From positions 1-52,617 of the forward strand of contig MCFE01000616.1 of assembly GCA_002104905.1 (NCBI GenBank): 52,617 nt of DNA, written 5' to 3'. The DNA comes from Basidiobolus meristosporus CBS 931.73. Taxonomy: Eukaryota; Fungi; Basidiobolomycota. The position numbers were made by a program, and so were the translations under genes. The notes beneath the pieces were generated by a model. It did not search any database. It had not been told where the DNA came from and saw only the letters and a list, made by a program, of their open reading frames with translations. Positions 2,134 to 52,617 of this stretch are shown piece after piece (within the stretch, counting starts at the first letter, position 1; each line of letters starts with the position of its first letter).

Positions 2134-2144
2134 CTGAGTGGGGG

Positions 2145-2476: not shown

Positions 2477-3640
2477 GCTTGTGCATTGGTCAAAGAGCCA
2501 ATTGGGGGCTGAAAGCTTCAGGATACTTTTGGACCAATTAGCCACTGGGGTACCATCCAATTGGAGTGATGGTAATTAAGATGGTAAGTATCAGTGTAGT
2601 TTATAGTGTGATACGCATTTATTTCCATTTACATTAAAGAAATATATCCAAATACTGGCTTTTACCTACCATAATAGTGGTATTCAATTGCGCACGTGAT
2701 GCAAACATTAGAAGTGGGCGCACTCATTTGTGCCAACCTCATTGCGTCAGATTGTGCCATAGTGTACAAGACTGTCCCATGTGGTGCAAAATTGTCTCAG
2801 AGCAATCCTGCCTACTGGTAGCTACAATATTGCACCCAATTGTTCTTAGAGACCGCAGATTGCACCGCGCACCCTGGCACAGTATGATGGAACCAGCCTA
2901 TTGGCTAAATACCAAAAAGCTCTTTGAAGATATTCAGGAGGTATTCATGCTAGAAGTGATGGCAACCAAGCATATGTTTGCAAGATATATATGTTACCAG
3001 CCGTACAATGTGTATGGCAGCTTTGCAAGTATCACACTCAAAAGCTGTAAAGTTGAGGTAGTAGAAGCTTGTTAATTGTGGCAGGTGTGCACATTTCTAG
3101 AGGTTAGTAAGCAGGAGGCCATAGTTTTTTTAATTCAACTATATGTGGAATACCAAAGGTAGTAGTGGGTAAGCAGATATAGAGGGTGTTTCTACAGAGG
3201 AATATATGAAATGCACAAGGGGAGGTAGAGAAAGGAAACACCATTTGGTAAATTGGTATGGTAGCATTATACAGCACTAGCTGTAGGCTGCCATACTGCC
3301 ATGATAATGCCATCAGAGGCTTGCAAAGAGGCCATCAAAGCACTGCCACATTCTTGGCCATATAAGGCAATTGGATGTACTGGCCAGTTAGATCCACTCA
3401 AATAGTTGTAAAGTGCACTAAGACTGCAACAATGGAATGCCACCCTTGACAAAACATTGTACAACACTGTTATATTTTATTAACTCTATTTGGCTGTAAA
3501 ATTAGCCAAACACCATTATCATCCTGTCACAAAATTGGGTAGATGGTCATTAATTCAAGCTGCTGGTATTATAGTGGTCTCCTGACAAGATCATGATGGC
3601 TGATCTGGATTGTATCCACCTGCAGGACCAAATTATTTTT
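2477..3640. repeat. Unclassified dispersed repeat (probable decayed transposon), left copy
   Basis: Aligns in inverted orientation to 43052-43916 plus 44681-45090 (roughly 75-80% by eye); a more diverged piece lies at ~7540-7720; the minus strand has broken coding-like frames (FECDTCK...SCKHMLGCHHF*HEYLLN). Confidence 0.75.
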
Positions 3641-6499
3641 CATTGGGTAAGTACCTCTACACTGCTACAATAGTTTTACCTCTTTTATTGTTGCACTGTC
3701 TCTACATACCTTGGTCTCATTGGTGATAAGAGTCAGGGGATACCCTTGGCATCCCACCTGAGTTCAGATGCACTGTAAAGTATGTCCATCTTATTTTTTT
3801 AAGTTTTTTGAGAAATCTGAGGTGCAATCTTTTTAACAGTCCTTGCATGATGTTCTTATGGCATCAATATCTTTTAGTCATGAGATTAAATCTTACAATG
3901 GCCTCTTGGCAGGATCATCAAAATTATTTCTCATAAGGAGTAAACACTACAAATAAAGTTGTGGCACCACATACACCTTTATATGCAACATTATTTCCCT
4001 TTGATTTGACTCACTCCCCTATATACCGCCAAAAATGAAGCAAAGCTGTCTAGTTCCCAGTCAAGCCTCACTACATGGGACAGCAGAAGTATGGTTGGGC
4101 AACAGCTTGCTTTGACATCCAATGCAACAAGCAGGACCACATCTTAAGAAGGCTATGCTATCAGTGTGCTCAGTGGAGGTAATAATGCTAACACCTGAGG
4201 CTTTCAGTTAGGTAGGCAATTGATAATCTCTATGGAGTTGTAAGCGGACCATAATGTTGAGGCAGACAGGAATGTAGCAAGCACAGTACCTCTGGGGGAA
4301 AACCAGATAATGACTGTTATAACCTTGCCACCTCCAGTATTAGCAAGTATGTGGTCAGCTTATGCCAAAGCATTGATATGGCAATTAGGTGCAGTAGTTA
4401 TTAGGATAGATACCATTGCCAAGAGAAATCATGGAGTTGTCCAGCAACAGGATGAGTGGATAATACATGTAGGGCAATCAACATTCCAGGCAGAAAATGC
4501 AGTATCCAGGCTGCAAAGAAGGAGTTCAAGTGGCTCAATATCATAGATCAGAGTTGGGCCATTTCTCAATGTAACAGCAGAAGAATGCTGTTCAGTCATT
4601 GAAGCACAACAGCAGTACTAAATGATAAAGCCTGCAGGATATCTACCAGCACAGGAGGGAGAAAATGTAGTGTTTATACCAAAGCCTAAAAATCATAAGA
4701 CATTGAAGATCTGTGAAGTCATTGAGTGCAATGATGAGCACTAAGAAAAAAATCAGGAAAAGGCCAGCAAAATACCATCATAATATTGGCTGAATTCCAA
4801 GTGTCTCAAGTGGACAAATGTCAATATCTGTGTTGTTAGCTGATGGGCAGGCATGGAAATATATTCCCCAGGAGGAGACTAGGCCAACTAGCATCCATAA
4901 CAAATTTTGTAATTAGCTGCCCAATACTTCCATCAAAAATTGCATTTGAAATTTTGAACCAAAAACACCAGCTGAATACCAGCAAATTACTGTCAGAATA
5001 CCAGCTGAAATTCAGATGAATTCCAAGTTTGAGATTTTTCATAGGAGAAGAGTGGGCTAATATTCAAGAGGCTGTTAGAAGTCCAGCACACCAACTCCTT
5101 AATGCAGGCATACAATGGGACTACCAGGAGCTCAAGGCCAAGCAGAATATGCTTGATCTGTTCCATGAGCATTATACTGTATTCAAAGAAGCAAATGGAT
5201 TTGTAGGCCAGCATTGGTATGCTAAGAAAGTATCTCAAAAATAGCAGAAACTATCAATGGCAGAGGTGTAAGGGCACCATGGTGAAACTAGTGGCTTCCT
5301 TGAGTGCCTGTAACAAGCAGGGCCAAAAGCTCCAGACAAGTGTCATAGAGACATCAGGTAGCTGGAAGAGTGCCAATTAGGGACAAGCAGACAGACACAG
5401 ATGCACCAGCACAACCTCTATCAAGGAAAAAAGTGTGATAAAAACCAGCAGCTTCATCAAGAGCCTACCACATGTAGGGCTCAAAGCTCAAAACAAACAG
5501 CAAAGAAACAACAGGTTGCCAGTGGAGTGCTGCTAAGGGACAAGTAGGCAGAAACATATATACTAGTGCAGCATTATCAAGGTGGAAATGTAAAATAATA
5601 CAAAAAAAACTTGGTCAAGGTATCAGTGAAAGATCCATCAGCAACAAAGGTAAAGGGAAGAAAGTCTACTCAAGCCAGAGACAGAGGAGCAAGAGAAAGG
5701 CAACTTGTTTACCACAGCCTCCATGCCTCCCATGATGGATAGAGTAGAGATTCCACTGACAGAAAAAGCAACAATGTCAAGAAATCAGGGGACTATCACA
5801 ATGCCTGTGGTGGAATTTTGGAGGATTAATAACTGCAGCACAAGGTTGCAGCACTTCTTCAATAGGAGTGGTCAAGAAAACTCGATTATTGCAGGGATTT
5901 ATTGCAAAGACTGGTGGATGAGGTGCCAGACCTTACAGTGCCAGCTGAAGACCTGAACATATGGGAACCAGTGAATGAACAATGGCATAAAGCTGTTGGG
6001 TTCCTGTCAAAGTAATGCAAAAGGGTGTTATGTCAGAAACACTTGTTGAGCTATGAATTTTAATGCAGTAACTTGTTGAGTATGAGGTTGGGCTCAATGT
6101 TGGTGTTGGTTATAGGGACTGGTATAGGTCAGTACAACTGGCAATTGAGTTACAATTGGAAATTTTACAGAAAAAAACCATTTGTATGCATGAGAAGTAA
6201 GAGCATTGCTTGAATCAGGAAGTAGGGAGTGTGAAAAAGAGGCAATAGCCAACCAACGCACACAAGCATAGAAGGTGATTCAGTGTCCTGGATCAGAAAG
6301 TGATAGAATTGGCAGAGAACCAATCAATATCCACTTATGTGTTGTTGTGATGAAAGATTTTGGCTGGGTTTTTTGTGAAATCTGGGGTTTGATTTTTTTT
6401 AACAGTCTTTGCTTGGTGTCCTGATAGGATCAGTACCTCTTAGTCATGGTCTTTTAATTTTGTCATGGCCTTTTGAGGTGATCATCACAGTTATTTTTT

Positions 6500-6923
6500 G
6501 CAGGGTACCTTTCTTTACCTTAAAGGAGCAGTTTGATGGAGTTTCAGAATGCAACCAACTAAGGCACTTTCCACACAGAGGCTGCATACATGGTAGCATG
6601 TGAGGCTATTAAACACCCAATGTTGCTAGGAAAGCTCTATGAAGATTTAGGCCACTATGAAAAAACCCCCACTACATTGGCTCAAGATATTCCTGGATTT
6701 ATGCAATCAGGTAAACATCCAATTTTTTCACTATAACCAAGCATGTATATATTAGAGATTCTCTCATATGGGAAGCTATAGAGAGTAGCCTAGCTGACTT
6801 AGTTTACTGTCCTATAGATGAAATGAACTCACATGTTCTCACTCAACCATTGGCTAGGGACAAATTTGAATAGCTTGAATCACAATTAGGCCTAATTAAT
6901 TTGGATATTTAGTTGAGTGGGGG
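6500..6923 (+). mobile_element. Second, older copia RNase H remnant plus PPT
   Basis: Colinear with 1720-2144 (e.g. gcactttccacacagagg, ttagtttactgtccta.agatgaaatga, gagtggggg PPT) but heavily mutated. Confidence 0.85.
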
Positions 6924-7271
6924 TGTGGCAGGATTTTTAATGGCACTTTGATATCCACCAAACTTGGTCACTTGGATCATTGCCAACAGATCTCAGAGAA
7001 CTCTGGCCAAATTATGTTCAGGGATTTACTTGGACAATTTTCACCAAAATATCCGGTACCCTGAGCATTGAAAGCCTCAAAGTTGTCCCAACAGCCCCAA
7101 GCTTTGCACACATGTCCTTGGGATCTTTGTAAGCATATTCTATATGTTTGTTTTGCCAAGACCATGTAAAAGTATATATACCACCACAACATGCAAAAAA
7201 TCATCAAGTGAACACCACATGATCTACTTGTTCTCCCAACCACTTCCAATATCTCCAAGACTCTGACAACA
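6924..7271 (+). mobile_element. Diverged copia 3' LTR of the same family
   Basis: TG start directly after the PPT, ends CAAGACTCTGACAACA; internal blocks match the LTRs at 2145 and 43917. Confidence 0.85.
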
Positions 7272-7435
7272 CCGCAAACCAGCAGCAACCCCAATGGAGA
7301 CAAACCTTAGCTTGGTCCAAAAGTTACCAAACTCAGAGAGCATGGCACCATACGAAATCCCAGACCCCACTTATGAATCTATGGCTGTCAGTTTGATGCA
7401 AATCGTGCTTGGAACATGGCCAGATATTGATTATG
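7272..7435 (+). mobile_element. Copia RT fragment directly after the LTR (probably an older element that received a nested insertion)
   Basis: Matches 1365-1520 (ccaatggagacaaacct...gcttggaacatg.ccagatat); translates METNLSLVQ...ESMAVSLMQIVLGTWPDI. Confidence 0.75.
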
Positions 7436-8305
7436 GTGAGGGTGATGAAACCAGTCTATGTATGCAGAGTGTGTAGACCACCAACAGTACATGGCATGTG
7501 GAAACTTTGCCAGTCTCCCACTGAAAAACCCTTGAGTCCAGGCACCAAAAGTGTATCAATCGCAGCTGGTATGAACATATGTTGAGGTTACTAAGCAGGA
7601 GGCGATAGGGTTTTTGGCTCACACTATATCTGGAATACCCAAGGTAACAGTGGGGAAAGTAAGAAGGGGGAATGGTTTTACGGTGGAACGTATGAATGGT
7701 GCAACAGGAGGTGATAAGGTGCAACGGCGGTTGAAAAATCTGTATGGTGACATCATACAATCCAAGCAGCTGGCCACCACCAAATCATCCAATGGCGATC
7801 AGAAGCCTGGCAAGAGGCTGCCAAGACACCAGGTATGCTCTTTCTGACCTGCAGCACACGAAAACGTTCCCAAAATAGGTTGCCACGAACCCGTCCAAGT
7901 GGGAAGCCCAGTCTGCACCATGGGCAGAAATGAGAACAGTGCAGCGATTTGGCTCCGTTTTTCCGCTAGATCGAAAATGTTACGCGTATCATTGGGTGCA
8001 AGATACGGGAGTGTTCTTGGGTCACATGGCTGGCTCCGGAACACCAGGCAGGCCCAACAAATCCCACTCTTTGTCGTTCAACCTGGGGGATAGCGGCGGT
8101 GGTGTATGGGCGTAGGTAAGGTAAGACTTGGAACTTTATACATCTTATTGTATTGGACTGGATAAATGTATACATACATCATGGAGAACAGGATGGGGGG
8201 AGGATGGGGGGCGGATGATTTCGATGACTACGGGCCAGTGTTTGCGGAGGGGAAGGGGATGGTGGGAATACATACAGTACATATATTGGTGGGGGAGGGG
8301 GATAT

Positions 8306-37766: not shown

Positions 37767-38720
37767 TTAATAATCACAGTACATTTGATTCACACCCCCA
37801 CGACAAACGGTTCCTGGAGCACAACGTTGTGTATATTCATATCCATTCGTGCAGACCTTGAACTCCCGGGATTGCCCAGGACTAACACATTTGGTCTCAA
37901 AGCCAGAACAGCGGCCAGGTTTGTTGCCTGGCTTAGATGGCTCAGTAGGGACCGGGTTGGAGGTAACCGTAGGCTTGTCAGAAGCAGCAGGCTTGGTGGG
38001 GGTAGGCTTGGCCGAGTCAGTGCTAGAAGGAGCTGGCTTGGTAGAGGTCGGCTTAGGTGGGGTGGAAGGCTCAGGATTGGTCTCGCTGCTGCCATTCCCA
38101 GTCACCTTCACCGTAGGTCTCTTGGGGAACAGGTCCTTGCCACTATACCCACCGTGAGTGAACTCGGGGATAGTGACATATCCAGGAAGATTGGCAACAA
38201 GCAGCTTTGGTCCGGTAATCGAGCCACTCGGGCTGCCTTGGACCTCAATATCAGCGCAGTTCATGTAGTACTCGCGATTTCCAGTCTTGTTGATCCAAGC
38301 CCAGGCAAATGTGGCCCTGCCACTGGGTGCCCCGGCTGGAATGGTGATGCTGTACTCACGAGACGCGATCAGGCAGTCGTCAAAGACATCCTTGAGGACA
38401 ACATAGGTCTTGTCATCGTAGGAGAGAGCGAATTGGCAATGGCCACCATCGTGAGGAGCTCCTCCCCCGATCTTTACTGGGAGACTGTTTCCAGCCTTGA
38501 TGGTCTGAACCACTCCGCCCTTGCCAAAGCCACGGCAAGGATATGGCCAACGACCCGTCTCCAATGGCGACGTCATGTCGTAATCAGGAGTACCCTTGTA
38601 AGTCGGGTTATACTGAGACTGACGTGGAGGTGGTTGGACCATTTCCATATGCCCCAAAGCATAGGGAGCAAGAGCCAGCAATGCAAGCGCGGGGAGAGAA
38701 AGCTTCGAGAGGACCATCAT
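37767..38720 (-). CDS. AA11-type lytic polysaccharide monooxygenase with Pro/Thr/Ser linker and C-terminal Cys-rich chitin-binding-like module; copy A
   Basis: Signal peptide ends ALG|H, giving mature His1 (HMEMVQP.P); YPCRG; GGAPHDGGHCQ (second His); WAWINKTGNREYYMNCA (axial Tyr); 4-Cys C-terminal module. Confidence 0.88.
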   Translation of the reverse strand: MMVLSKLSLPALALLALAPYALGHMEMVQPPPRQSQYNPTYKGTPDYDMTSPLETGRWPYPCRGFGKGGVVQTIKAGNSLPVKIGGGAPHDGGHCQFALSYDDKTYVVLKDVFDDCLIASREYSITIPAGAPSGRATFAWAWINKTGNREYYMNCADIEVQGSPSGSITGPKLLVANLPGYVTIPEFTHGGYSGKDLFPKRPTVKVTGNGSSETNPEPSTPPKPTSTKPAPSSTDSAKPTPTKPAASDKPTVTSNPVPTEPSKPGNKPGRCSGFETKCVSPGQSREFKVCTNGYEYTQRCAPGTVCRGGVNQMYCDY

Positions 38721-39513: not shown

Positions 39514-40467
39514 CTAGTAGTCACAGTACATTTGATTCACACCACCACGACAAACGGTTCCTGGAGCACATCGTTGTGTATATTCATAACCATTGGTGCA
39601 GACCTTGAACTCCCGGGATTGCCCAGGGCTAACACATTTGGTCTCAAAGCCAGAGCAGCGGCCAGGTTTGTTGCCTGGTTTAGATGGCTCAGTAGGGACC
39701 GGGTTGGAGGTAACCGTAGGCTTGTCAGAAGCAGCAGGCTTGGTAGGGGTAGGCTTGGCCGAGTCAGTGCTAGAAGGAGCTGGCTTGGTAGAGGTCGGCT
39801 TAGGTGGGGTGGAAGGCTCAGGATTGGTCTCGCTGCTGCCATTCCCAGTCACCTTCACCGTAGGTCTCTTGGGGAACAGGTCCTTGCCACTATACCCACC
39901 GTGAGTAAACTCGGGGATAGTGACATATCCAGGAAGATTGGCAACAAGCAGCTTTGGTCCGGTAATCGAGCCACTCGGGCTGCCTTGGACCTCAATATCA
40001 GCGCAGTTCATGTAGTACTCGCGATTTCCAGTCTTGTTGATCCAAGCCCAGGCAAATGTGGCCCTGCCACTGGGTGCCCCGGCTGGAATGGTAATGCTGT
40101 ACTCACGAGACGCGATCAGGCAGTCGTCAAAGACATCCTTGAGGACAACATAGGTCTTGTCATCGTAGGAGAGAGCGAATTGGCAATGGCCACCATCGTG
40201 AGGAGCTCCTCCCCCGATCTTTACTGGGAGACTGTTTCCAGCCTTGATGGTCTGAACCACTCCGCCCTTGCCAAAGCCACGGCAAGGATATGGCCAACGA
40301 CCCGTCTCCAATGGCGACGTCATGTCGTAATCAGGAGTACCCTTGTAAGTCGGGTTATACTGAGACTGACGTGGAGGTGGTTGGACCATTTCCATATGTC
40401 CCAAAGCATAGGGAGCAAGAGCCAGCAATGCAAGCGCGGGGAGAGAAAGCTTCGAGAGGACCATCAT
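39514..40467 (-). CDS. AA11-type LPMO, copy B (protein identical to copy A)
   Basis: Same 317-aa translation, offset 1747 bp; only synonymous nucleotide differences. Confidence 0.88.
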   Translation of the reverse strand: MMVLSKLSLPALALLALAPYALGHMEMVQPPPRQSQYNPTYKGTPDYDMTSPLETGRWPYPCRGFGKGGVVQTIKAGNSLPVKIGGGAPHDGGHCQFALSYDDKTYVVLKDVFDDCLIASREYSITIPAGAPSGRATFAWAWINKTGNREYYMNCADIEVQGSPSGSITGPKLLVANLPGYVTIPEFTHGGYSGKDLFPKRPTVKVTGNGSSETNPEPSTPPKPTSTKPAPSSTDSAKPTPTKPAASDKPTVTSNPVPTEPSKPGNKPGRCSGFETKCVSPGQSREFKVCTNGYEYTQRCAPGTVCRGGVNQMYCDY

Positions 40468-42731
40468 GTTAGAGAAGTAGAGGAATAATATAGCCAGCTA
40501 GCCTGCTAGAAGATTTGCAGATTTATCTATGCCAGTAGATAGATGTAGTTGATGGTGAGGCAGGAACCCTTCAGAGTATTTATAGTAGTTGGTGCGGAGA
40601 ATCAGTACAGATATAGGATGACTGAAGGGTGGTTGTGAAATTTCTTAAAACTACTATTACTAGTCAACACTACTTATTACACAAGAGTTTGAGGCAATTA
40701 TCCTTCTGCTTTTACATTACGATACCGTTTACAGCGTGACATTTTTCACTGTTCCTTTTGGTTGAACATTCACTACCCATATATAGCATTATTAAGGACC
40801 AGGGCCTACCTTACAATGAGCACATAGATATAGGTTACACACTATGCATATGGCTTCTGAATGCCAAAGTTTGTAATGAAAATCTGGAACTTGCAAGGTA
40901 ACTCGATATGCTACAATCGATAGTAATCTTGTGCTACGGTCCCAGGACAACGTGCCACTTTTATGCAAGAAGAGCAGCAGTATTCATGCAGAAACACTGC
41001 GCGGTCCAAACCTGTAATTTGAATATTGTGTAATAACTCATTGTCACCTTAGAGAGCTATATCAAAAATTTTCTTTGGGGAAATTAACAGTATCACTTAA
41101 CATACTAGTCACAATTAGAGCTGTTCCTTACGCAAGCACCCACAGAGTCAAATCGACACCACTCACCTTCATAATCCAGCAACTAAATTGGTGGTAGCTT
41201 AAGAAGACTTGGTCAAGTCATATTAAAATCTGCTCATTAAGCGAAACTGGCTATTTTGGATTATGCTAGCCAACTGATCTTACCAGAGTTTTGGTTTTAC
41301 GGCTTCATAAAGCAGCGGTTATGGTAGTTAATTACAAGCGATGCATTTTAGGATCATTCAAATAATCTTGTGGAACGAATCCACGTTGGGGCCAAATAGG
41401 TTCGGGGTTCAATTCCTGGTTAAACTCGATTATGCTTGAATCATATTATCTCTAGTGAAATCAAATGCTTTAATTAGTTTACCACACCTTCTGGACTGAT
41501 TTTGTATGGCACTTTAATGAAACACGTTGTTTGTTTCCAGAATACTGTATAGAGCTACCCAAGTTGGAAGAAAAGATTTGATTTTCTAGCAGTAAGGTTG
41601 TTAATTTCTAACTATTATGCAATATTTGCATATACAGGTAAATAAACACCATTACTTGTACAGGTTTGTTTTTTATCCAATGGTGAAGACTAATTTATTT
41701 TTGAAAAGCAAGTGTATTAATTAGTAAATAGCCTCAAGGAATTGCCTCCTCAAATTTCCTACTGAAACTACTCACCAAACACCAACAGAAATCCAGCTTT
41801 CCTTGTATTTACAATTTTCAGCAAACAATGTTCTAGCCCTATTGAGGATCAAAATACATATATGCTTGGATATATTTTGCCTGCTTAATCTGCATCTCAA
41901 ATACTGTTATATGCAGTCCACTTACTCCTGTTTTGTACCTCAAAAGCTGACAAAAAAAAGAGGTTGATAATAGAATACTGTATCCAATCCTGGCTTGATA
42001 CTTTGCACAGAAGTTGTTTAGTTGAGGTAATCAACCTGGAGTACTCAGTCTTGGTGGTAATGAGCAGTCTTGTATTGACATATGGGGAACCAGTCAATTG
42101 TTCCTTATCAAAGAGTTTATGCTTGAGATTCACTTGAAAGCTTACAGGTATTCTGATTGTATTTTGCAGGCATCCAGCTGGTGTTTTTCCTAGATATATA
42201 TGGTAGTAAATTTTGTGGAAGTAGAGAGTGACTTATTACCAGATCTGGTATAGGTTTTATTTAGCCTTGCCTCATTCTAAAAAGCAATACTTCTTCTCTA
42301 TCTGACAGCTGGAGCCTGCAATATATAATCTTGTGTGATTAGATAAATTTGGAGCTTGGCTAAGTACTATGCTGATTATCCCTAGGCCTTTTGTATTGTT
42401 TTTCACTTGGGGATTTTGCTGGTACTCAGCAGGTAATTAACAGACACTCAGCTAGTGTGTTTCCTTTGAATTCCTAGCTGTAAGCTATTGGGGAAGTAGT
42501 GGGTAGTTTATAATCAATTCAAGTTTAAGTGCTATTCCACCTAACCTTCTACTTAGACAACACACACATTTCTTCTGCAAACAAGTTTACACTAACTGAC
42601 ATCCAAAATAAACAGTATAGATGTGGCTCCAGGGATGAGTGGAATGTGCATCATCAGAAACAACCAACCATAGATATGAATACACAGTCAGGCATAGTAG
42701 AAATTGAAACCTTTATGCTCAGAACATCAGG

Positions 42732-43051
42732 AGGGTTAGGGGGAAACAGTCACCAACAGGTGAAATCTTTATTTCAGTTGAAACAAAGAAGCCAGCACTA
42801 CTGTTGTAGCTTTGATACAAGAGTGTGTAGCTGAGGGGAATTTGTAGGTAAGTTTACAAGAAGTGATGATAGTTCTTCAGTGCTCAAGACACTGTTCAGG
42901 GGGAAGGGGGGTAGCAAGAGGGGTAAGAATGATTTGTGAACAACATTAATGAGGGGAATATGATAAGGATTGATATTCATCATAAAGGGAGTGTGCTGCT
43001 TCAGATATTGCAGCCAAAGGTCTGTCAAGTACTTCAGGTAGGCCAGCTTGG
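42732..43051 (-). mobile_element. 3'-end fragment of the subtelomeric LINE (copy 1), more diverged
   Basis: Matches 49117-49426 and 45158-45465, including the ORF2 C-terminus (KLAYLKYLTDLW...LHTLVSKLQQ*), AATAAA and hairpin; junction reads AGGGTTAGGG. Confidence 0.92.
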
Positions 43052-43916
43052 CCCTATGAAAAGTAATTTGGTCCCACAGGTGGATCCAATCCAGATCATC
43101 CATCAAGATCCTGTTTAGAGACTGTCATAATAACAGCAGCTTGGAATTAGTGACCCTCCTGACAATCTTATAATGAGATCATGATGGTGTTTTGCAAATT
43201 TTACAGCCAAATAAAGGGATAAAACTTGACAATTTTTGGTTGGTGCTATGACAATATTTGCATGGTATTGTTGCGGTCTTTCAGCACTCTATTACTATTT
43301 TAAGTGGATCCAGTTGGCCAGGACTTCCAATTGCCTTATATGGCAAGAAACTTGACAGTATTTTGACAGCCTCACAGAAAGACTCTGATGGCTTTTTCTT
43401 GGCAGTATGATGGCCTGCCACTGGTTCTGTATAATGCTACCATACCAATTTACCAAATGGTATTTCCTTTTTCTACCTCCCCTTGTGCAATTCATATATT
43501 CCTCTGCAGAATCACCCCTGTTGATTTGCTTACCCACTACTATATTGGGTATTCCACATAAAGTTTGAATAAAAAAAAACTATGGCCTCCTGCTTACTAA
43601 CCTCTACAAACACACACACCTGCCACAATTGACATACTTCTATCACCTCAACTATACAGCTTTTTAGTGTGATACTTGCAAAGTTGCCATAAACCTTGTA
43701 CTGCTGGTAGCATATACATCTTGCAAACATATGCTTGGTTGTTGCCACTTCCGCCATGAATACCTCCTGAATATTGGCAAAGAACTTCTTGGTATTTAGC
43801 CAATATATTCCTTCTCCCTGCTGGATTCTAGTCCCCCTTGTAGGTGTGCTCTGGCTTTTGTTTGCGTGAATTCCGTATTGAATGGTGTAGAAGTTGGCTT
43901 GTGACCACAAGAAATC

Positions 43917-44265
43917 TGTTGTAAAAACTTGTAATTCCACCTAAATATTCACCTAACTTAGTCAATTAAATCATTACCCTCAAATTCTAGAGAATACTGA
44001 CCAAATTCCTTGTTGGGATTTACTTAGAATATTTTCACCAAAATACCAGGTACCCAGAACATGAAAATTCTCAAAGTTGTCCAAACAGCCCCAAACTTTG
44101 CACACATGTTCTTGGGACCTTTCTTAGCCTACTCTATGTGTTTGCAATGCCAAGACCTGGTAAAAGTATAAATACTACTTTTACATTCCATATATCATTA
44201 AGTGAAAACCACATAATCTACTTGTTCTCCCAATCACTTCCAATATCTCCAAGACTCTTACAACA
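43917..44265 (+). mobile_element. Copia 5' LTR (349 bp)
   Basis: TGTTGTAA...TTACAACA; same family as 2145-2476; immediately followed by a PBS and gag. Confidence 0.93.
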
Positions 44266-44277
44266 GGTTATGAGCCC
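44266..44277 (+). promoter_or_regulatory. Primer binding site GGTTATGAGCCC (half-tRNA-iMet type), containing the gag ATG
   Basis: Directly abuts the LTR end; same PBS type as Ty5 and Drosophila copia; ATG at 44270 opens the gag frame. Confidence 0.85.
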
Positions 44278-44680
44278 CAAGCTGTCACTCTCTGCAATGT
44301 CTACTACTGCTATTACTGGAATTTTTTCCTCTGCTGAAAAGTTGGATGGATCTAACTACCAAGTGTGGAAGGTGAAGACAAAGATGCTGCTACAAGAAAG
44401 AGGCCTTTGGGATATTGTCATGGGAAGAAAATGCCCTCCTAAAACTGTGAGAGAGGAAGTCTTGAAGTACCAGAAGAAAAAACAAAGTGCCTCTAACTGC
44501 ATTTGCCTTAATGTTAAAGACAAGTTGCTAATTCAGTGCTCAAGAGCAAAAACAGCAAAGAATGCCTGGAAGGCATTAGAAGACACCTACCAGTCATGTT
44601 CAGCGGCTAGGAAAGTGTATCTGAGACAAAAATTCTTTACTACAAAGATGCTGCCAGCAGAAGAAATGAAAATTCTGTAG
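44270..44680 (+). pseudogene. Truncated copia gag N-terminus
   Basis: EKLDGSNYQVWKVK.KMLL.ERGLWDIV.G...AK.AW.AL...Y.......K..LR.KF (copia gag N-terminal/UBN2-like region); stops where the host repeat resumes. Confidence 0.88.
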
Positions 44681-45212
44681 ACTTGTTCCATTGTACCATG
44701 CCAGGGCACGCGGCGTAATCCGTGGTTGTAAAGGACAATTGGGCGCAACATTATAGCTACCAGAAGGCAGATTTGTTCATGGACAATTTTGCACTATGCG
44801 GGATGATCTTGCACACTATGGCACAATCTGACACAATGAGGTTAGCACGGATGATTGCACCAACTTGTAATGTTTGCATCATGTGCGCAATTGGATATCG
44901 CTACTAAGGCAGGTAAAATCTGGTATTTGGATATGTTTCTTTAATGTAAATGGAAATAAATGTGTATCACACTAATAACTACACTGATACTTACCATTTC
45001 GGTTACCCTCACTCCAATTGGACAGTATCTCAGTGGTTAATTGGTCCAAAAGTATCCTGAAGCTGGCAGCCCCCAATTGGCTCATTGACTACTGAAAAAG
45101 CTACCTGATTTGCCATCAAATATCCCATTTTGCCCATTGAGCAAGTAAATCCTAGGGGAGACAGTCACCAATAGGTGAAATCTTTATTTCAGTTGAAACA
45201 AAGAAGCCAGCG

Positions 45213-47979
45213 CTACTGTTGTGGCTTTGATACAAGAGTGTGTAGCTGAGGGGAATTTGTAGGTAAGTTAATAAGAAGGGATGATAGTTCTTCAGTGCTC
45301 AAGACACTGTTCAGTGGGAAGGGGGGTAGCAAGAGAGGTAAGAATGACTTGTGAACAACATTAATGAGGGAAATGTGATAAGGATTGTTATTCATCATAA
45401 AGGGAGTGTGCTGCTGCAGATATTGCTGCCAAAGGTCTGTCAAGTACTTCAGGTAGGCCAGCTTGGGTTTTCCTGACTGCAGAATAAATTCAGCAAACTT
45501 CTTGACTTCAGGATCTCCAAGTATAGTTCTCCAGCAGGAGCCAGGTGTTGTGGTGTGTTCTCTTCCAGGCCTTAATCAGTGGGCTGTTGCAGTTGTGAAG
45601 TCTGAGGTATAATCTGGTTCTAAGGTAGAGAAGTATGATCTTATAGGGCATAAACCCAAAAGCACCAAGAATAGCATGTCTGTAGGGGCATTCAGGCAAA
45701 TGAGGCACCAAGGAGGTAATGCACCATACTGCAAACTTGTCAAGCTTAGTGCAGTCTCTAGAAGTAAGAGAGAGAAGTGGTAGGCCAAATTCCAGGACAG
45801 GGAAGACAAACTGCTTGAGTAGAAGGAGGCAGCTGGGAGCTGAAGTTGTAGGAGGAGTAACAGCCAGTAGCTTGTGGAGTGCCTGTCTTGCCAGGATAAT
45901 TCTCTTCTTCAGGTGTGCTCCAGAGTCTAGTCCAGTAGGAAGGAAAGGAAAGCCAAGATATGTAGCAGAAACCTGAGCAGGTAGAGTGGAGTTCTCCAAG
46001 TTGATGGGAGAGCCCAAAGGTACTGTCTTTGCAATGGAAAGCTGGAGATTATTCTTCTGCAGATACTGGTGGATGGTCTGGGAGTCTTGTTGCACATTGG
46101 AGGAGGATATTCTGATGTCATCAGCAAAGAGAGTAACCAGGCAGTCAGCTGAGAGTCTTGGGAAATCATTCAGGAAGATGGCAAACAGTATAGGACCAAG
46201 CACAGAGCCTTGAACCACTCCATTAGGAACTGAGTACACAGCTGATTGCTCACTTGGGTGCAGAATTCTTGCTTGTGGATCCAGAAACAGAGACCTGACA
46301 AGGAGGGTGAGAGAGGTACTGGAGAAGCATTGCAGCTTGGACCAAAGCAGATTTCTGTCAACTGAATCAAAGGCCTTAGTAATATCAAACAGAACAGAGG
46401 GATACTTGCACTGGAGAGAGTGATCTTGGCTAAGTATGACTGCATATTCCAAGGAGAGGCCAGGAACAAAGCCAAACTGTGCAGGATGAAACTTGAGGGA
46501 GTCAGAGTAGAGCTCCTGAGCAAGCAGAAGCTCAAACACCTTTCTGCAGGTGGGCAGCAGAGATATTGGCCTGTAGGAGCTAGGATCCAGGTACTTTCCT
46601 TTACCCTTGTACAGTGGCAGAACATTTGCAAAGGACCATTCCTCAGGAGTAGAAAGCTGGGCGGAGCATTGCTGAAACAGTGGAAGCAGAAGTGCAGACA
46701 TGGCCTTGGTACTAGTCTTCAGAAGCTCATAAGAGATTGTGTCCACACCTGGAGCAGTAGAGTTGGGAAGCCTCTTGAGCACATTATGGATTCTCCCTTG
46801 ATCAAGTGCAAGTGGGATGGGCAGAGTCTTGAAATCAGGATGAAAGCCTGGAGTTGAGTACTGCTTTGTAGAGAAGAAGATGTTAGCCAGCTGCTCTGTT
46901 GAAGGTAACTTCCTGGAAGAGGGCCTCATTGCCCTGTAGAGTCTTGATACTGTTCTTGTTATAGAGTTGGAAGATTGCAGAGGCAAGGAACTCATAATAT
47001 GATCCCAGAGCTGAGTATGCAGAGTATGGTGAATTGCCTTGGAGTGGTGTATTGCTGTCAGGAGGAGTTTCTCTGTTTTTGGGTTAGGGAAACTCAGGTA
47101 GCTTTGTTGCAGGGTTGAAACAATGGATTCCCATTTTCTTGAGGTAACAGCAGTAGTCTTGCATGGCAGTGAGAGGGAGGCAGACACCAGAATCAGATGC
47201 TTCACAAAGAGTCAGGCATAGTTGAGATCATCTGGCAGAGAAAGTAGCAAACTGGCAAGCTTCAAGTAGTTCCCAAAGTCTTTCTTCTGATTCTTGGTAG
47301 CTTTGTGGGTGAGCACAGTAAGTTTTGGCAGCTTCTTCTTCACAACTGGTTGCATAGAAAGGGACCAGGCTGGGTGGTCAGATGCTCTCAAGGATCCTAG
47401 CTCAGCTCCAGAGAATTGCTTAACTTCATTCACAAAGTAGAGGGCAGCAGCAGAAGGGCAGATCCAGTCAACACATCTTTTCTCAGATTGAGCACCTAGT
47501 GCTAGCAGATGGCTTTCTCTCAGGAAGTTCAGTAGGAATGTAGACCTTGGCTTCATTCTTGCAGTCAGAGTAGTCTTGCTCTCAGGATGGGGAATGTTGA
47601 GATCTTCAAGCAAGATAATAGGTGTTGGTATAGATTGCTGGTATTGCTAAACTTTCTGGCATATAACTTGCACTTCCTGAAGGGCAAGACTTGGAGGCAG
47701 ATAGCAGAGCACCAGAATGATAGTTGGCAACTGGAGAGCAGCACACTAAGGGGAGTAAAGAGGAACACAGAGCTGAGGAGTATTGATGGTAGAAGAGATG
47801 AAGCAGATAGAGGAGGTATTCTTTGTTCTAGGAGTAGAGAAGCAATATTGATTAGTCAAAAGTATAGAGGGTAGCTGGACATCAATCAAGCACAGGAGGG
47901 AAAATCTTGAAAGAAGTCTCTCTAGAGTTGGTCTTGATGGCTGTATGCTGTTGCAGTTAAGCAACAGAACTTCAGGTAG
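45213..47979 (-). pseudogene. LINE ORF2 (APE-RT) of copy 2, disabled
   Basis: Relative to copy 3: CAG to TAG (~47647), GDLN to EDLN, TGG to TGA (~47212), 2-bp deletion near 45550. Confidence 0.9.
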
Positions 47980-49081
47980 TCAGGCAGAGGTTGTAGCTTC
48001 TTCAGAGGCAGCATTGACAATGTGACCTGCAGAGTCCCAGTGCTCTTCAAATGGTGCATCACTTAAGTCAGCAAGGAGGGAAATGGCATGGTTCTTGAGG
48101 AAGTATGCTACATCATAGGAGGGGGCTTGTCTCTTGATGGCAGCAAAGAAAGACAGAATGGCAACATGGGCTGGAGGCTTGTTGAACAGTAGAGAGTCAG
48201 AGGATTCAGATTCTTCAGGCACTATCTTGAAGTCAGTTTTCAGCCAGTTAAGGTTCTTCTCCACAAAGGCAACAAATGGGTCAGCAATGTTTTGGTCTAG
48301 AATAACCTCCAGAATCTTCCCTTTTCTCCAGGCCAGGTTAACAATTCTTGAGAGCTGAATATTGCATGCCTTGAGTGCTTTCCTGATGTTGGAAATGGGA
48401 GTCCAGGGAACTTGCTTCAAGTACACCACAGTCCAGGTAGAAGCTGGTGGTAGGTTTGCTGGGGGCTTGTAAGTCCTTCTGTGTGGCAATGTAGCTGCAG
48501 TAGTCAGATTGGAGTCCACATTCTTAGTAGAGGGTTTTCTTGATGTGTCTTGCGGAATGGTACTGGAGCTGGATGTGCTGAGAATTCTTGCTAGAACCTT
48601 GCCTGCATAAGTCTGAGGTATAGCTGAGGTGACTGTAGAGGTGGTGACAGCTGGTGCAGGTGGAGAGGCAGAAACTGAAGCAGGAACTGAGGTCACCTGG
48701 GAGAAGGCAGTAGAAGCAGGTTTTCTGGGAGGAACAGAGTTCACTATCCAGTTGTTCTGTAAAACACTGGAGTAGCTTTTCTGTGGAACAGGATCTTGCT
48801 CTTGAACAGGAACAGAAGCAGGAGGCTGGGGCTGAGCAGTAGTGGTAAGAGAGTGGCACTCCAAGGAAGCTTTTGCAAGGCATCTCTGGCAGTTTTCAGG
48901 GCAGTATTGGCTTCATTCTTGAGCTTCTTGCATTGGGCATCCAGTCTCTTGTTTTCAATAGCCAGGACAGTATTGGCAGCCTCTAAATCAGCAATTCACT
49001 TCTCAATTGCAAGGAATCTCTGACAAAATGCATCAGTAGAAGTGCGGCAACTGGGAGAGCAGTGGCAGGAATAGACTCCAT
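47980..49081 (-). pseudogene. LINE ORF1 of copy 2: N-terminal coiled coil, Ser/Pro/Thr low-complexity linker, RRM-like C-terminal block; 2 frameshifts and 1 stop in the 5' part
   Basis: Reconstructed MESIPATALPVAA/TSTDAF...IEK*IADLEAANTVLAIENKRLDAQCKKLKNEAN.../ASLECHSL...WTVVYLKQVP..ISNIRKALK..I..IVNLAW..GKILEVIL; no CCHC knuckle seen. Confidence 0.75.
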
Positions 49082-49110
49082 TGACAGTGGCTTCTTGAGG
49101 CAGAAGTGAC

Positions 49111-52100
49111 TTAGGGGGGAGACAGTCACCAACAGGTGAAATCTTTATTTCAGTTGAAACAAAGAAGCCAGCGCTACTGTTGTAGCTTTGATACAAGAGT
49201 GTGTAGCTGAGGGGAATTTGTAGGTAAGTTAATAAGAAGTGATGATAGTTCTTCAGTGCTCAAGACACTGTTCAGTGGGAAGGGGGGTAGCAAGAGAGGT
49301 AAGAATGCCTTGTGAACAACATTAATGAGGGGAATGTGATAAGGATTGATATTCATCATAAAGGGAGTATGCTGCTGCAGATATTGCTGCCAAAGGTCTG
49401 TCAAGTACTTCAGGTAGGCCAGCTTGGGTTTTTCTGACTGCAGAATATAGTGAGCAAACTTCTTGATGTCAGGATCTCCAAGTATAGTTCTCCAGCAGGA
49501 GTCAGGTGTTGTGTGGTGTGTTCTCTTCCAGGCCTTAATCAGTGGGTTGTTGCAGTTGTGAAGTCTGAGGTATAATCTGGTTCTAAGGTAGAGAAGTCTG
49601 ATCTTATAGGGCATAAACCCAAAAGCACCAAGAATAGCATGTCTGTAGGGGCATTCAGGCAAATGAGGCACCAAGGAGGTAATGCACCATACTGCAAACT
49701 TGTCAAGCTTAGTGCAGTCTCTAGAAGTAAGAAGAGAAGTGGTAAGCCAAATTCCAGGACAGGGAAGACAAACTGCTTGAGTAGAAGGAGGCAGCTGGGA
49801 GCTGAAGTTGTAGGAGGAGTAACAGCCAGTAGCTTGTGGAGTGCCTGTCTTGCCAGGATAATTCTCTTCTTCAGGTGTGCTCCAGAGTCTAGTCCAGTAG
49901 GAAGGAAAGGAAAGCCAAGATATGTAGCAGAAACCTGAGCAGGTAGAGTGGAGTTCTCCAAGTTGATGGGAGAGCCCAAAGGTACTGTCTTTGCAATGGA
50001 AAGCTGGAGATTATTCTTCTGCAGATACTGGTGGATGGTCTGGGAGTCTTGTTGCACATTGGAGGAGGATATTCTGATGTCATCAGCAAAGAGAGTAACC
50101 AGGCAGTCAGCTGAGAGTCTTGGGAAATCATTCAGGAAGATGGCAAACAGTATAGGACCAAGCACAGAGCCTTGAACCACTCCATTAGGAACTGAGAACA
50201 CAGCTGATTGCTCACTTGGGTGCAGAATTCTTGCTTGTGGATCCAGAAACAGAGACCTGACAAGGAGGGTGAGAGAGGTACTGGAGAAGCATTGCAACTT
50301 GGACCAAAGCAGATTTCTGTCAACTGAATCAAAGGCCTTAGTAATATCAAACAGAACAGAGGGATACTTGCACTGGAGAGAGTGATCTTGGCTAAGTATG
50401 ACTGCATATTCCAAGGAGAGGCCAGGAACAAAGCCAAACTGTGCAGGATGAAACTTGAGGGAGTCAGAGTAGAGCTCCTGAGCAAGCAGAAGCTCAAACA
50501 CCTTTCTGCAGGTGGGCAGCAGAGATATTGGCCTGTAGGAGCTAGGATCCAGGTGCTTTCCTTTACCCTTGTACAGTGGCAGAACATTTGCAAAGGACCA
50601 TTCCTCAGGAGTAGAAAGCTGGGCTGAGCATTGCTGAAACAGTGGAAGCAGAAGTGCAGACATGGCCTTGGTACTAGTCTTCAGAAGCTCATAGGAGATT
50701 GTGTCCACACCTGGAGCAGTAGAGTTGGGAAGCCTCTTGAGCACATTATGGATTCTCCTTTGATCAAGTGCAAGTGGGATAGGGCAGAGTCTTGAAGTCA
50801 GGATGAAAGCCAGGAGTTGAGTACTGCTTTGTAGAGAAGAAGATGTTAGCCAGCTGTTCTGTTGAAGGTAACTTCCTGGAAGAGGGCCTCATTGCCCTGT
50901 AGAGTCTTGATACTGTTCTTGTTATAGAGTTGGAAGATTGCAGAGGCAAGGAACTCATAATATGATCCCAGAGCTGAGTATGCAGAGTGTGGTGAATTGC
51001 CTTGGAGTGGTGTATTGCTGTCAGGAGGAGTTTCTCTGTTTTTGGGTTAGGGAAGCTCAGGTAGCTTTGTTGCAGGGCTGAAACAATGGATTCCCATTTT
51101 CTTGAGGTAACAGCAGTAGTCTTGCATGACAGTGAGAGGGAGGCAGACACCAGAATCAGATGCTTCACAAAGAGCCAGGCAAAGTTGAGATCATCTGGCA
51201 GAGAAAGTAGCAAACTGGCAAGCTTCAAGTAGTTCCCAAAGTCTTTCTTCTGATTCTTGGTAGCTTTGTGGGTGAGCACAGTAAGTTTTGGCAGCTTCTT
51301 CTTCACAACTGGTTGCATAGAAAGGGACCAGGCTGGGTGGTCAGAGGCTCTCAAGGATCCTAGCTCAGCTCCAGAGAATTGCTTAACTTCATTCACAAAG
51401 TAGAGGGCAGCAGCAGAAGGGCAGATCCAGTCAACACATCTTTTCTCAGATTGAGCACCTAGTGCTAGCAGGTGGCTTTCTCTCAGGAAGTTCAGTAGGA
51501 ATGTAGACCTTGGCTTCATTCTTGCAGTCAGAGTAGTCTTGTTCTCAGGATGGGGAATGTTGAGATCTCCAAGCAAGATAACAGGTGTTGATATAGATTG
51601 TTGGTATTGCTGAACCTTCTGGCATATAATTTGCACTTCCTGAAGGGCTAGACTTGGAGGCAGATAGCAGAGCACCAGACTGATAGTTGGCAACTGGAGA
51701 GCAGCACAGTAAGGGGAGTAAAGAGGAACACAGAGCTGAGGAGTATTGATGGTAGAAGAGATGAAGCAGATAGAGGAGGTATTCTTTGTTCTAGGAGTAG
51801 AGAAGCAATATTGATTAGTCAAAAGTATAGAGGGTAGCTGGACATCAATCAAGCACAGGAGGGAAAATCTTGAAAGAAGTCTCTCTAGAGTTGGTCTTGA
51901 TGGCTGTATGCTGTTGCAGTTAAGCAACAGAACTTCAGGTAGTCAGGCAGAGGTTGTAGCTTCTTCAGAGGCAGCATTAACAATGTGACCTGCAGAGTCC
52001 CAGAGCTCTTCAAATGGTGCATCACTTAAGTCAGCAAGGAGGGAAATGGCATGGTTCTTGAGGAAGTATGCCACATCATAGGAGGGGGCTTGTCTCTTGA

Positions 52101-52423
52101 TGGCAGCAAAGAAAGACAGAATGGCAACATGGGCTGGAGGCTTGTTGAACAGTAGAGAGTCAGAGGATTCAGATTCTTCAGGCACTATCTTGAAGTCAGT
52201 TTTCAGCCAGTTAAGGTTCTTCTCCACAAAGGCAACAAATGGGTCAGCAATGTTTTGGTCTAGAATAACCTCCAGAATCTTCCCTTTTCTCCAGGCCAGG
52301 TTAACAATTCTTGAGAGCTGAATATTGCATGCCTTGAGTGCTTTCCTGATGTTGGAAATGGGAGTCCAGGGAACTTGCTTCAAGTACACCACAGTCCAGG
52401 TAGAAGCTGGTGGTAGGTTTGCT
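49111..52423 (-). mobile_element. Non-LTR (LINE) retrotransposon copy 3, terminal, 5'-truncated inside ORF1 by the telomere
   Basis: ORF2 spans 49174-51942 (~920 codons) with no in-frame nonsense, only two single-base indels (~50780 and ~49730); ORF1 remnant at 51943-52423; APE GDLN intact. Confidence 0.96.
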
Positions 52424-52617
52424 TAGGGTTAGGGTTAGGGTTAGGGTTAGGGTTAGGGTTAGGGTTAGGGTTAGGGTTAGGGTTAGGGTTAGGGTTAGGG
52501 TTAGGGTTAGGGTTAGGTTAGGGTTAGGGTTAGGGTTAGGGTTAGGGTTAGGGTTAGGGTTAGGGTTAGGGTTAGGGTTAGGGTTAGGGTTAGGGTTAGG
52601 GTTAGGTTAGGTTAGGT
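52423..52617 (+). repeat. Telomeric repeat (TTAGGG)n, chromosome end
   Basis: About 32 tandem units running to the end of the window, G-rich strand 5'-3' toward the end; a few TTAGG variants (~52513 and the last three units). Confidence 0.98.

Follow-up and report, generated by a model that had tools for sequence, protein, structure and literature searches.

How three copies of one LINE came to lie in a single direction against a chromosome end was the question raised by contig MCFE01000616.1 of Basidiobolus meristosporus CBS 931.73, analyzed here over its positions 1 to 52,617 (52,617 nt, the window). The window terminates in a true telomere, (TTAGGG)n from position 52423 with the G-strand outward, and the copies belong to one APE+RT LINE family (family A), all on the minus strand. 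From the telomere inward, the features are as follows.

52423..52617, plus strand: terminal telomere tract (TTAGGG)n with a few TTAGG variants (tracts 52423-52512 and 52518-52601), the G-strand running 5' to 3' to the window end.
49120..52422, minus strand: copy 3 of family A, outermost and youngest with a divergence of 0.53% from the family consensus, its truncation capped directly by telomere repeats.
49120..49180, minus strand: conserved 3' UTR module with hairpin 1 (containing AAUAAAG), hairpin 2 (UCACC-N4-GGUGA) and a single-stranded pyrimidine linker leading to the tail.
49111..49119, minus strand: tail of copy 3, plus-strand sequence TTAGGGGGG, in RNA sense C6-UAA, adjoining the 5' end of copy 2.
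45159..49110, minus strand: family A copy 2, 1.10% from consensus, with ORF1 (coiled coil), APE domain and RT (RVT_1, 1.6e-25).
45152..45158, minus strand: tail of copy 2, plus-strand sequence (C)TAGGGG, in RNA sense C4-UA, joined to a broken copia fragment.
43052..45151, no strand assigned: rearranged pieces, between copies 1 and 2, of a Copia-like LTR retrotransposon that is present in high copy number, with a gag ORF at 44138-44680.
42744..43051, minus strand: copy 1 of family A, innermost of the three and oldest with 3.25% divergence from consensus, a 3' fragment of ~310 nt.
42732..42743, minus strand: tail of copy 1, plus-strand sequence AGGGTTAGGGGG, in RNA sense C5-UAACCCU, joined to a single-copy flank.

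The three junctions read as given in the original prediction: AGGGTTAGGGGG-AAACAGTCACC at 42732, CTAGGGG-AGACAGTCACC at 45152, and TTAGGGGGG-AGACAGTCACC at 49111. When re-read from the sequence, their G-runs were 5, 4, and 6, and the claimed lack of an A-tail was borne out by the absence of an A/T tract at all three. Copies 2 and 3 are arranged head-to-tail and copy 3 passes into (TTAGGG)n at 52423, both as described earlier. Copy 2 is incomplete: a longer copy at L010:4358-8763 reaches ~450 nt further 5', and all three window copies are therefore 5'-truncated. Copy 3 (49116-52423) is 98.4% and copy 1 (42740-43051, 312 nt) 95% identical to copy 2 (45152-49110). Copy 3, cut at its 5' side inside ORF1, retains the C-terminal part of ORF1 together with the APE domain and RT; it has two private frameshifts, and its extra base at 50781 is absent in most genomic copies. 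The 33-nt 3'-end motif occurs three times in the window against zero expected by chance, and junction 42732 is bridged by a 399-nt short-read contig at the single-copy depth of 85.

In RNA sense, each window copy ends in GGUGACUGUCU, followed by C4-6 and UA(A) with or without CCCU, and poly(A) is absent. The 3' UTR has a predicted structure with z = -3.7 and 14 pairs, one of them covarying (GC/AU/CG/UG), and structure prediction leaves the tail unpaired and single-stranded beside the conserved 3' structure. Among 23 hairpin-type ends across the arrays, the tail consists of a C-run of 4 to 10 followed by 0 to 15 telomere-phase letters, with a maximum of 2.5 units. An A-tract was found at none of these 23 ends, nor at those of family D, element S, and tail types C and E. 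The predicted 3' tail of the RNA reads as the telomeric G-strand in reverse complement and stands in place of poly(A), in line with the original prediction. At the junctions L009:7893 and L010:8760, the C-run is present without telomeric letters, and at window 45151 only the 'TA' of the tail is found on the broken copia. With no telomeric primer at these sites, the RNA must itself carry at least some of the tail, and TTAGGG is not strictly needed for priming.

The same arrays were found at three further contig ends of this genome, one of which has a second true telomere (end of MCFE01000243.1, L010:1-198, (CCCTAA)33). At both true telomeres, telomere repeats, the product of telomerase, follow directly on a truncated copy of family A. 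The polarity claimed for the window extends to these ends: 5' ends face outward at the two independent telomeres and at two further contig ends, and the five arrays together hold 23 hairpin-type 3' ends, all from copies with their 5' ends toward the nearer telomere or contig end. From distal to proximal, divergence from the family consensus was 0.53, 1.10, and 3.25% in the window, 1.03, 4.43, and 6.49% in L009, 0.88, 0.82, and 1.85% in L008, and 0.57, 0.44, 0.97, and 0.92% in L010 plus L007; this distal-to-proximal rise in every array indicates growth at the tip. Copies are 5'-truncated at many different points, and in the arrays inspected each truncated copy is preceded by the tail of another element. 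At 45151, a copia element stops at its junction with the LINE and does not resume distally; other copia copies continue past the equivalent position. In genome-wide contigs, many different truncation points are joined to TTAGGGGGG-AGACAG via GG, GGG, AGG, or CTTAGGG, and several truncated copies are joined to a telomere tract. Such one-way stacks with the youngest copy outermost suggest direct copying of the elements onto worn chromosome ends, in parallel with telomerase. The tails do not exceed 2.5 units, compared to at least 195 nt in real telomeres, so addition would take place where almost no telomere is left. In L008, a 491-nt unit also appears to be duplicated in tandem, and flanks in the contig data are AT-rich and diverse.

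The telomere-type tail is common to at least three LINE families (A, B, and D) and to the non-coding passenger elements S and SINE2, and two more tail types, C and E, are known from 3' ends only. Family D, with intact ORFs, has ~25% protein identity to P0002, which is the ORF2 from an element closely related to family A. Pfam searches gave RVT_1 matches at 1e-25 to 4e-27 and weak matches to Exo_endo_phos and Exo_endo_phos_2, for which the cut-off was reached by P0006 only. The family profile matched human L1 endonuclease chains at 1e-10, and together with RVT_1 this upheld the earlier assignment to APE+RT LINEs. The architecture is APE followed by RT, and no REL-type (restriction-like endonuclease) domain was found by Pfam; ORF1 gave only weak coiled-coil-like matches and no zinc knuckle. 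No Rfam ribozyme was detected at E<=0.1 in window positions 40000-52617, L002, L009, and L010. The APE domain of families A and B retains the N, Y, GDxN, and SDH motifs; Asp stands in place of the metal-binding Glu in 'ETW', and the column aligned with the partner Asp of the catalytic His holds Ala, with an invariant 'CVDW' 7 residues upstream. All APE catalytic residues (N, E, Y, D-x-N, D, and S-D-H) are present in family D. The best explanation is that family A is one member of a guild of chromosome-end-specialised non-LTR retroelements in B. meristosporus.

We consider it somewhat probable that, at short or eroded chromosome ends, the C-strand-like tail of the RNA pairs with the 3' end of the G-strand and is reverse-transcribed on the spot, with telomerase re-capping the product. 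The RNA would end in the two-hairpin 3' UTR, a single-stranded C-run, UAA, and up to two further CCCUAA units without poly(A), and this tail would pair with, or simply abut, the G-strand 3'-OH at an end bearing 0 to 3 remaining repeats. The element RT would copy the RNA onto the chromosome end, the cDNA becoming the new distal G-strand with the element 5' end outward, and 5' truncation would arise from incomplete copying or later erosion. TTAGGG repeats from telomerase, or another element, would be added next, and repetition of the cycle would generate one-way head-to-tail arrays with the youngest member outermost. The primer is presumably provided by a natural or eroded end and not by an endonuclease nick, pairing of the tail probably guides initiation, and the elements may bring some benefit to the host. 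As some junctions have no telomeric letters, pairing with TTAGGG would not be obligatory, and as families A and B conserve the APE domain and family D has it in canonical form, an endonuclease step is likely at least some of the time.

That step is central to the main rival, TRAS-like nicking of telomeric repeats, in which the APE would nick the G-strand in telomeric or telomere-like repeats, the complementary RNA tail would anneal to the nicked strand, and arrays would result from the terminal tract being the target. Read-through 3' sequence of R1 is said to anneal likewise at its nicked target. TRAS forms arrays of the same polarity, which in TRAS1 results from endonuclease nicking of the TTAGG strand (G-strand), so polarity alone is not discriminating; the ORF1 of TRAS/SART has zinc knuckles. 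The age gradient would also be expected if the terminal tract were the only target, and a family D copy that lies at a telomere-like tract in an internal position and has host-like DNA on its 5' side fits such nicking, as do the conserved APE of families A and B and the fully canonical one of the intact family D. SART1 requires at least 3 repeats and a long poly(A) tail, and three repeats suffice as a SART1Bm target (PMC7265360). A random nick in a tract would, however, leave long internal tracts, and the short tails therefore count against this reading: across ~30 junctions, the proximal side holds 2.5 repeat units at most, versus at least 33 units in real telomeres. Most primer sides are non-telomeric (truncated LINE body, copia, or unique DNA), three junctions have the C-run only, and in families A and B the metal-binding Glu is replaced and the His-pairing Asp is off its aligned position. 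On this evidence, we regard TRAS-like nicking as rather unlikely. TRAS/SART (R1 clade; Bombyx, Tribolium, and aphids) resemble the Basidiobolus elements in being APE-type LINEs confined to telomeric repeats with telomerase-type repeats kept (PMC10088271), but they have a poly(A) end, a fixed cut position in the repeats, and a location within long repeat tracts. The Basidiobolus elements have no poly(A), at most 2.5 units at junctions, non-telomeric primer sides, and an ORF1 without zinc knuckles; no fixed-position insertion in long telomeric tracts was seen, the proximal side being non-telomeric beyond those 2.5 units.

Many stringent-type LINEs have a 3' hairpin and a short-repeat tail, e.g., UnaL2 with (TGTAA)n, and the family could likewise be an ordinary dispersed LINE whose microsatellite-type tail resembles the telomere repeat by chance, with tolerant subtelomeres and arrays formed by nested insertion and recombination. 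Its copy number, in the thousands (summed depth 2e5 to 1e6 versus a single-copy depth of 85), would agree with this and tells against copying onto chromosome ends; so would the flank diversity and the tandem 491-nt unit of L008. We find this improbable, since orientation is uniform (23/23) with a distal-to-proximal age gradient, no older copy in the arrays inspected is split in two, no target-site duplication was found at any inspected junction, and a motif search of 42 kb of gene-bearing window DNA found no family A copies. Moreover, the exact host telomere unit serves as the tail in several otherwise unrelated element families, and telomeres cap the terminal copies directly at two ends.

Array 2, on contig 243 (MCFE01000243.1), lies ~17 kb inside the telomere and is not terminal now; between it and the chromosome end lie 6 kb of host-like DNA plus an intact copy of family D, which has no tail at its 5' flank. 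Its internal position requires later capture of terminal DNA or endonuclease-mediated insertion. Contigs 243 and 244 have in common an 11-kb block of host-like DNA and family D at 98-99% identity that ends exactly at the family D tail. Although this block and the tandem 491-nt units in L008 favor DNA-level exchange between chromosome ends (break-induced replication, unequal exchange, or terminal-block capture) as the main builder with retrotransposition minor, we hold this to be still less probable than a dispersed LINE, because truncation points, C-run lengths, and tail phases vary among junctions, which indicates independent events, and the copies differ mutually, graded by age.

Copying onto worn ends, the reading that we prefer, has its closest parallel in the Penelope-like Athena and Coprina elements of rotifers, fungi, protists, and plants. 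Gladyshev and Arkhipova in 2007 reportedly described one-way head-to-tail telomeric arrays with short telomeric stretches between 5'-truncated copies, where telomerase coexists. The endonuclease-deficient Athena and Coprina carry short reverse-complement telomeric repeats at the RNA 3' end, by which they are proposed to attach to G-rich overhangs at G-strand 3' ends (10.1101/2021.04.23.441226). They differ in having a Penelope/TERT-like RT, no endonuclease, and hammerhead ribozymes beside the repeats, whereas the Basidiobolus elements have an N-terminal APE, a LINE-type RT (RVT_1), a coiled-coil ORF1, no Rfam ribozyme, and a C-run before the first UAA.

HeT-A/TART/TAHRE attach through oligo(A), have 5' ends outward and 5'-truncated copies, and include coexisting autonomous and non-autonomous partners; TART also retains the APE. 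These Jockey-clade elements of Drosophila, which has lost telomerase (PMC6581046), share with the Basidiobolus elements successive transposition onto chromosome ends (PMC2173066, PMC5537684) and, for HeT-A/TART, head-to-tail arrays with 5' ends toward the chromosome end. In contrast, the Basidiobolus arrays are capped by (TTAGGG)n, and the tail is the telomere complement with no oligo(A). Zepp has poly(A) tails, nests in itself, and has a 5'-truncated copy that telomere repeats directly adjoin; the insertion site of Tx1-1_ACar is (TTAGGG)n, and to our knowledge no telomere-complement tail has been reported for either. Zepp of Chlorella and Tx1-1_ACar of the green anole are likewise APE-type, telomere-associated LINEs, L1-like or Tx1 (PMC10088271). 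Among fungi, MoTeR, FoTeR, and Cnl1 are also telomeric non-LTR elements (PMC12857005, PMC7367193), but they belong to the CRE/SLACS clade with a restriction-like endonuclease (PMC12857005), in contrast to the APE domain in Basidiobolus. These were the published fungal telomeric LINEs found, in agreement with the remark in the original prediction that no APE-type equivalent was known from early-diverging fungi, and a literature search found no published description of the Basidiobolus elements.

Tentatively, APE LINE lineages and SINE-like passengers may have converged on a device known to date from Penelope-like elements that lack an endonuclease, namely mimicry of the telomerase template by the RNA 3' end. 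In this telomerase-positive, early-diverging fungus, they may heal and extend worn ends and, in thousands of copies, possibly build the subtelomeres of most or all chromosomes. As a minor observation, the Copia-like fragments at 43052..45151 are related to window positions 1-7800.

The final 195 nt of the window were (TTAGGG)n, the G-strand pointing 5'->3' to the window end, as it does at a genuine chromosome end. Proximal to this tract lay an array of the APE- and RT-bearing LINE family A, accompanied by pieces of a Copia-like element:

49116-52423, minus strand, family A copy 3, proximal to the telomere tract
45152-49110, minus strand, family A copy 2
42740-43051, minus strand, family A copy 1, a 312-nt 3' fragment
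43052-45102 and 1-7800, rearranged pieces of a Copia-like LTR retrotransposon (gag 44138-44680, RVT_2 856-2133)

The three copies of the original prediction were confirmed, but copy 2 proved not to be full length, ~450 nt being missing from its 5' end relative to L010:4358-8763 on contig MCFE01000243.1. The three 3' junctions read as predicted, with G-runs of 5, 4, and 6 and an A/T tract at none of them. The 33-nt terminal motif occurred three times in the window versus zero expected, and neither this motif nor a similar one was present in the other 42 kb, which carried ordinary genes for a sugar transporter, glyoxal oxidase, ammonium transporter, and malate dehydrogenase. The LINE ORFs of the window matched RVT_1 (1e-25) and gave a weak Exo_endo_phos signal; at L001 and L002, two loci of relatives, ORF1 and ORF2 were called as two ORFs lying 3 nt or 306 nt apart. 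An assembly artefact at 42732 was rejected, and the copy 1 junction is real, because a short-read contig of single-copy depth (85) bridges it.

Five loci from the window and three further contig ends of the same genome were taken in, and the best named protein matches of the element were hypothetical proteins of Basidiobolus meristosporus CBS 931.73, encoded by GCA_002104905.1 contigs, which bears out the original suggestion that the host is an early-diverging fungus. Contig MCFE01000243.1 (loci L010 and L007) opens with (CCCTAA)33, and its start is a second true telomere. Behind it come a 29-nt family A remnant and an array of 9 kb; host-like DNA then fills 6 kb before an intact family D LINE and a second array, which is now internal. 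On MCFE01000090.1 (L009) and MCFE01000244.1 (L008), arrays were located 0-15 kb from the contig end. Hairpin-type 3' ends of families A and B numbered 23 in non-redundant sequence, and the uniform polarity foreseen for them held throughout, the 5' end facing the nearer telomere or contig end in 23/23. Their C-run was 4-10 long, and the letters after it that kept the telomere phase numbered 0-15 (2.5 units at most, at least TAA in 19/23 ends); none of the 23 carried poly(A), and two junctions consisted of the C-run without any telomeric letters.

Among the strain's own short-read contigs listed, many more head-to-tail joints led from varied truncation points to TTAGGGGGG-AGACAG via GG, GGG, AGG, TAG, or CTTAGGG. 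A related family in Logan and ENA assemblies, whose protein was 66% identical, had the same kind of 3' ends, ...GTCA-CCCCCTAACCC(TAA) and ...CTTT-C9-TAA, the latter followed immediately by the 5' end of the next copy. Summed over the contigs listed, the depth of family A was 2-4e5 at a likeness of at least 98% and ~1e6 at a likeness of at least 85%, versus a single-copy depth of 85, which indicates thousands of copies, five loci of which were examined here. The arrays are a sizeable part of the genome and probably explain why many assembly contigs stop at subtelomeres.

The telomere-complement tail, in RNA sense a C-run and UAA in place of poly(A) or a variant of it, was shared by a set of LINEs, tail types, and non-coding elements.

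Elements and tail types bearing telomere-type 3' ends
Family A: LINE of the window; 3' end ...ggtgactgtct, C-run, TAA...
Family B: LINE, 44% identical to family A in the endonuclease region; hairpin module of family A, then ...ggtgactttccct-CCCCTAA...
Family D: LINE, ~25% identical to P0002 (ORF2 of a close relative of family A); 3' end ...aataaagtatctaaaag-CCTAACCCTAACCC, without C-run; apparently intact at L008:6294-10870 (ORF1 530 aa, ORF2 998 aa, APE fully canonical)
Type C: known by its 3' end only, CCCCTAACCCTAA
Type E: known by its 3' end only, ...gcgcaa-CCCTAACCCTAA
S: non-coding, ~470 nt; 3' end ...cctaca-CCCTAACCCTAACCC; L008:11028-11495, L007:13116-13318, L009:6630-7057
SINE2: non-coding, ~530 nt; a tRNA-like T-arm motif in the head and a 3' end as in family B, whose 3' module forms the last ~80 nt; L010:2352-2890, L007:12720-13115, L010:2888-3219

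That several otherwise unrelated families end in the telomere unit of the host argues that the tail is functional and not accidental. The T-arm motif in the 5' head of SINE2 was GGGTTCAAATCC, ARAGORN called no tRNA in this head, and 5'-truncated SINE2 copies were present too. Element S contained an internal gaattcTAACCCTAAggg, GGTTAGGG-like motifs on the opposite strand, and two short GC hairpins. The named relatives nearest to family D, 38-46% identical, came from Smittium mucronatum and S. culicis, and no obvious telomere-type tail was seen in their 3' flanks.

The last ~60 nt of the hairpin-type ends were predicted to fold into two hairpins (-20.1 kcal/mol, z = -3.7) that leave the C-rich tail single-stranded. 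Across 12 diverse ends, stem 1, which includes AAUAAAG, had one covarying pair (GC/AU/CG/UG), and stem 2 (UCACC/GGUGA) was invariant with a variable loop. In stringent-type LINEs, the RT recognises a 3' hairpin beside a short-repeat tail, and the Basidiobolus 3' module resembles this arrangement. No Rfam ribozymes were found in window 40000-52617, L002, L009, or L010. In the APE domain of families A and B, N, Y, GDxN, and SDH were conserved, and the Glu of 'ETW' was replaced by Asp. At the aligned position of the Asp partner of the catalytic His, both families had Ala, and an invariant CVDW was located seven residues ahead of this position. Because of these two unusual positions, endonuclease activity appears uncertain in families A and B; in family D, all canonical APE residues were present, which makes activity plausible. 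The APE segment alone had no match in PDB by phmmer, and a match was obtained only with a profile. Beyond their own families, the RTs matched generic APE-LINEs only (best hits, PDB, and Atlas), with human L1 ORF2p at 1e-15 in the searches with both family A and family D.

In each array, divergence from the family A consensus increased away from the tip (values listed starting at the distal copy):

Window array: 0.53, 1.10, 3.25%
L009 array: 1.03, 4.43, 6.49%
L008 array: 0.88, 0.82, 1.85%
L010 plus L007 array: 0.57, 0.44, 0.97, 0.92%

By a rough estimate, equally consistent orderings would arise by chance in ~1 in 650 trials, and the consistency across arrays indicates that new copies join at the tip. 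Every truncated copy was preceded by the tail of another element, and neither split older copies nor target-site duplications were found at the junctions inspected. At window position 45151, a broken copia is joined to the LINE via TAGGGG only; other copia copies continue beyond this break point, and nothing of the same copia was found distal to it in the window. Tip addition also fits the preceding tails, the absence of split copies and target-site duplications, the broken copia, and the junctions made of a C-run only. Random endonuclease insertion into LINE bodies was rejected, as split copies were absent from the loci examined.

On balance, we lean towards a mechanism in which element RNA would be copied sequentially onto chromosome ends nearly stripped of their telomere, with telomerase re-capping them afterwards. 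The tail C6-UAA would pair with ...TTAGGG-3', and extension would yield exactly TTAGGGGGG-AGACAG; judged from the junction sequences, the RNA would have to supply the C-run together with, at a minimum, the first UAA. The primer 3'-OH could be a natural or eroded end or, alternatively, an endonuclease nick, and the extra one to two telomere units could be RNA-borne or a few repeats put on beforehand by telomerase. Re-capping takes place, since the window and L010 both contained capped truncated copies, and a telomere tract was directly attached to several truncated copies in the short-read contigs listed. The strongest competing reading, TRAS-like nicking of telomeric repeats, gives the same polarity and likewise predicts the age gradient. 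We consider it less likely; it leaves unexplained both the non-telomeric primer sides and the ~30 junctions that all hold at most 2.5 units, versus at least 33 units in the telomeres.

Along with addition at the tip, DNA-level exchange between chromosome ends also shapes these regions, as an 11-kb block is common to contigs 244 and 243 (L008:1-11026 and L007:845-11701, 98-99% identity). The block consists of the intact family D LINE and of host-like DNA that carries three orphan ORFs, and stops exactly at the telomere-type tail of family D. In contig 243, it is preceded by a family B tail and behaves like a single array unit; it is either a very long 5'-transduced transcript or the product of break-induced copying begun in a repeat tract.

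Telomere-seeking retroelements are known from a handful of lineages, and telomere-complement tails are, to our knowledge, on record so far only for Penelope-like elements that lack an endonuclease. The Basidiobolus elements share the telomere-complement tail with Penelope-like elements and differ in that its bearers are LINEs with an APE domain. The telomeric LINEs listed in a recent review are TRAS/SART (R1), Tx1-1_ACar, Zepp, Drosophila HTT (Jockey), GilM/GilT, and MoTeR (PMC10088271); MoTeR, FoTeR, and Cnl1 of fungi are CRE-clade elements with a restriction-like endonuclease (PMC12857005), and RNA 3' ends with reverse-complement telomeric repeats occur in the endonuclease-free Penelope-like Athena and Coprina (10.1101/2021.04.23.441226). 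A literature search for Basidiobolus with telomere, retrotransposon, or LINE returned no description, and none of the non-LTR/telomere papers listed in a further search named Mucoromycota or Zoopagomycota. What is new is that Penelope-like telomere-complement tails occur on APE-domain LINEs, here as a guild of several families with their passengers in an early-diverging fungus. Several APE-LINE families and their non-autonomous partners have the tail solution of Penelope-like elements, and the fungus that carries them continues to make TTAGGG repeats. This offers a natural case for asking how a retrotransposon RT comes to prime on a chromosome end, a question relevant to how retroelements and telomerase are related and to how Drosophila-type telomeres arose.

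The summed short-read depth of the Copia-like element reached 1.2e6 in the contigs listed, matching that of the LINE. CpG observed/expected was 0.00-0.02 in the LINE copies (window 45001-52422), though these are young (0.5-1% from consensus), and was 0.06-0.14 in copia fragments, ~0.25-0.3 in intact family D, and ~0.85 in host genes (window 7501-37500). The window also contained a 230-nt direct duplication of 96% identity (37768-37997 and 39515-39744), with long ORFs on both strands in both regions. Directly proximal to the L009 array, five tandem genes for CHAP-domain proteins of ~181-231 aa (bacterial-type amidase/peptidase) were located at L009:10790-18266.
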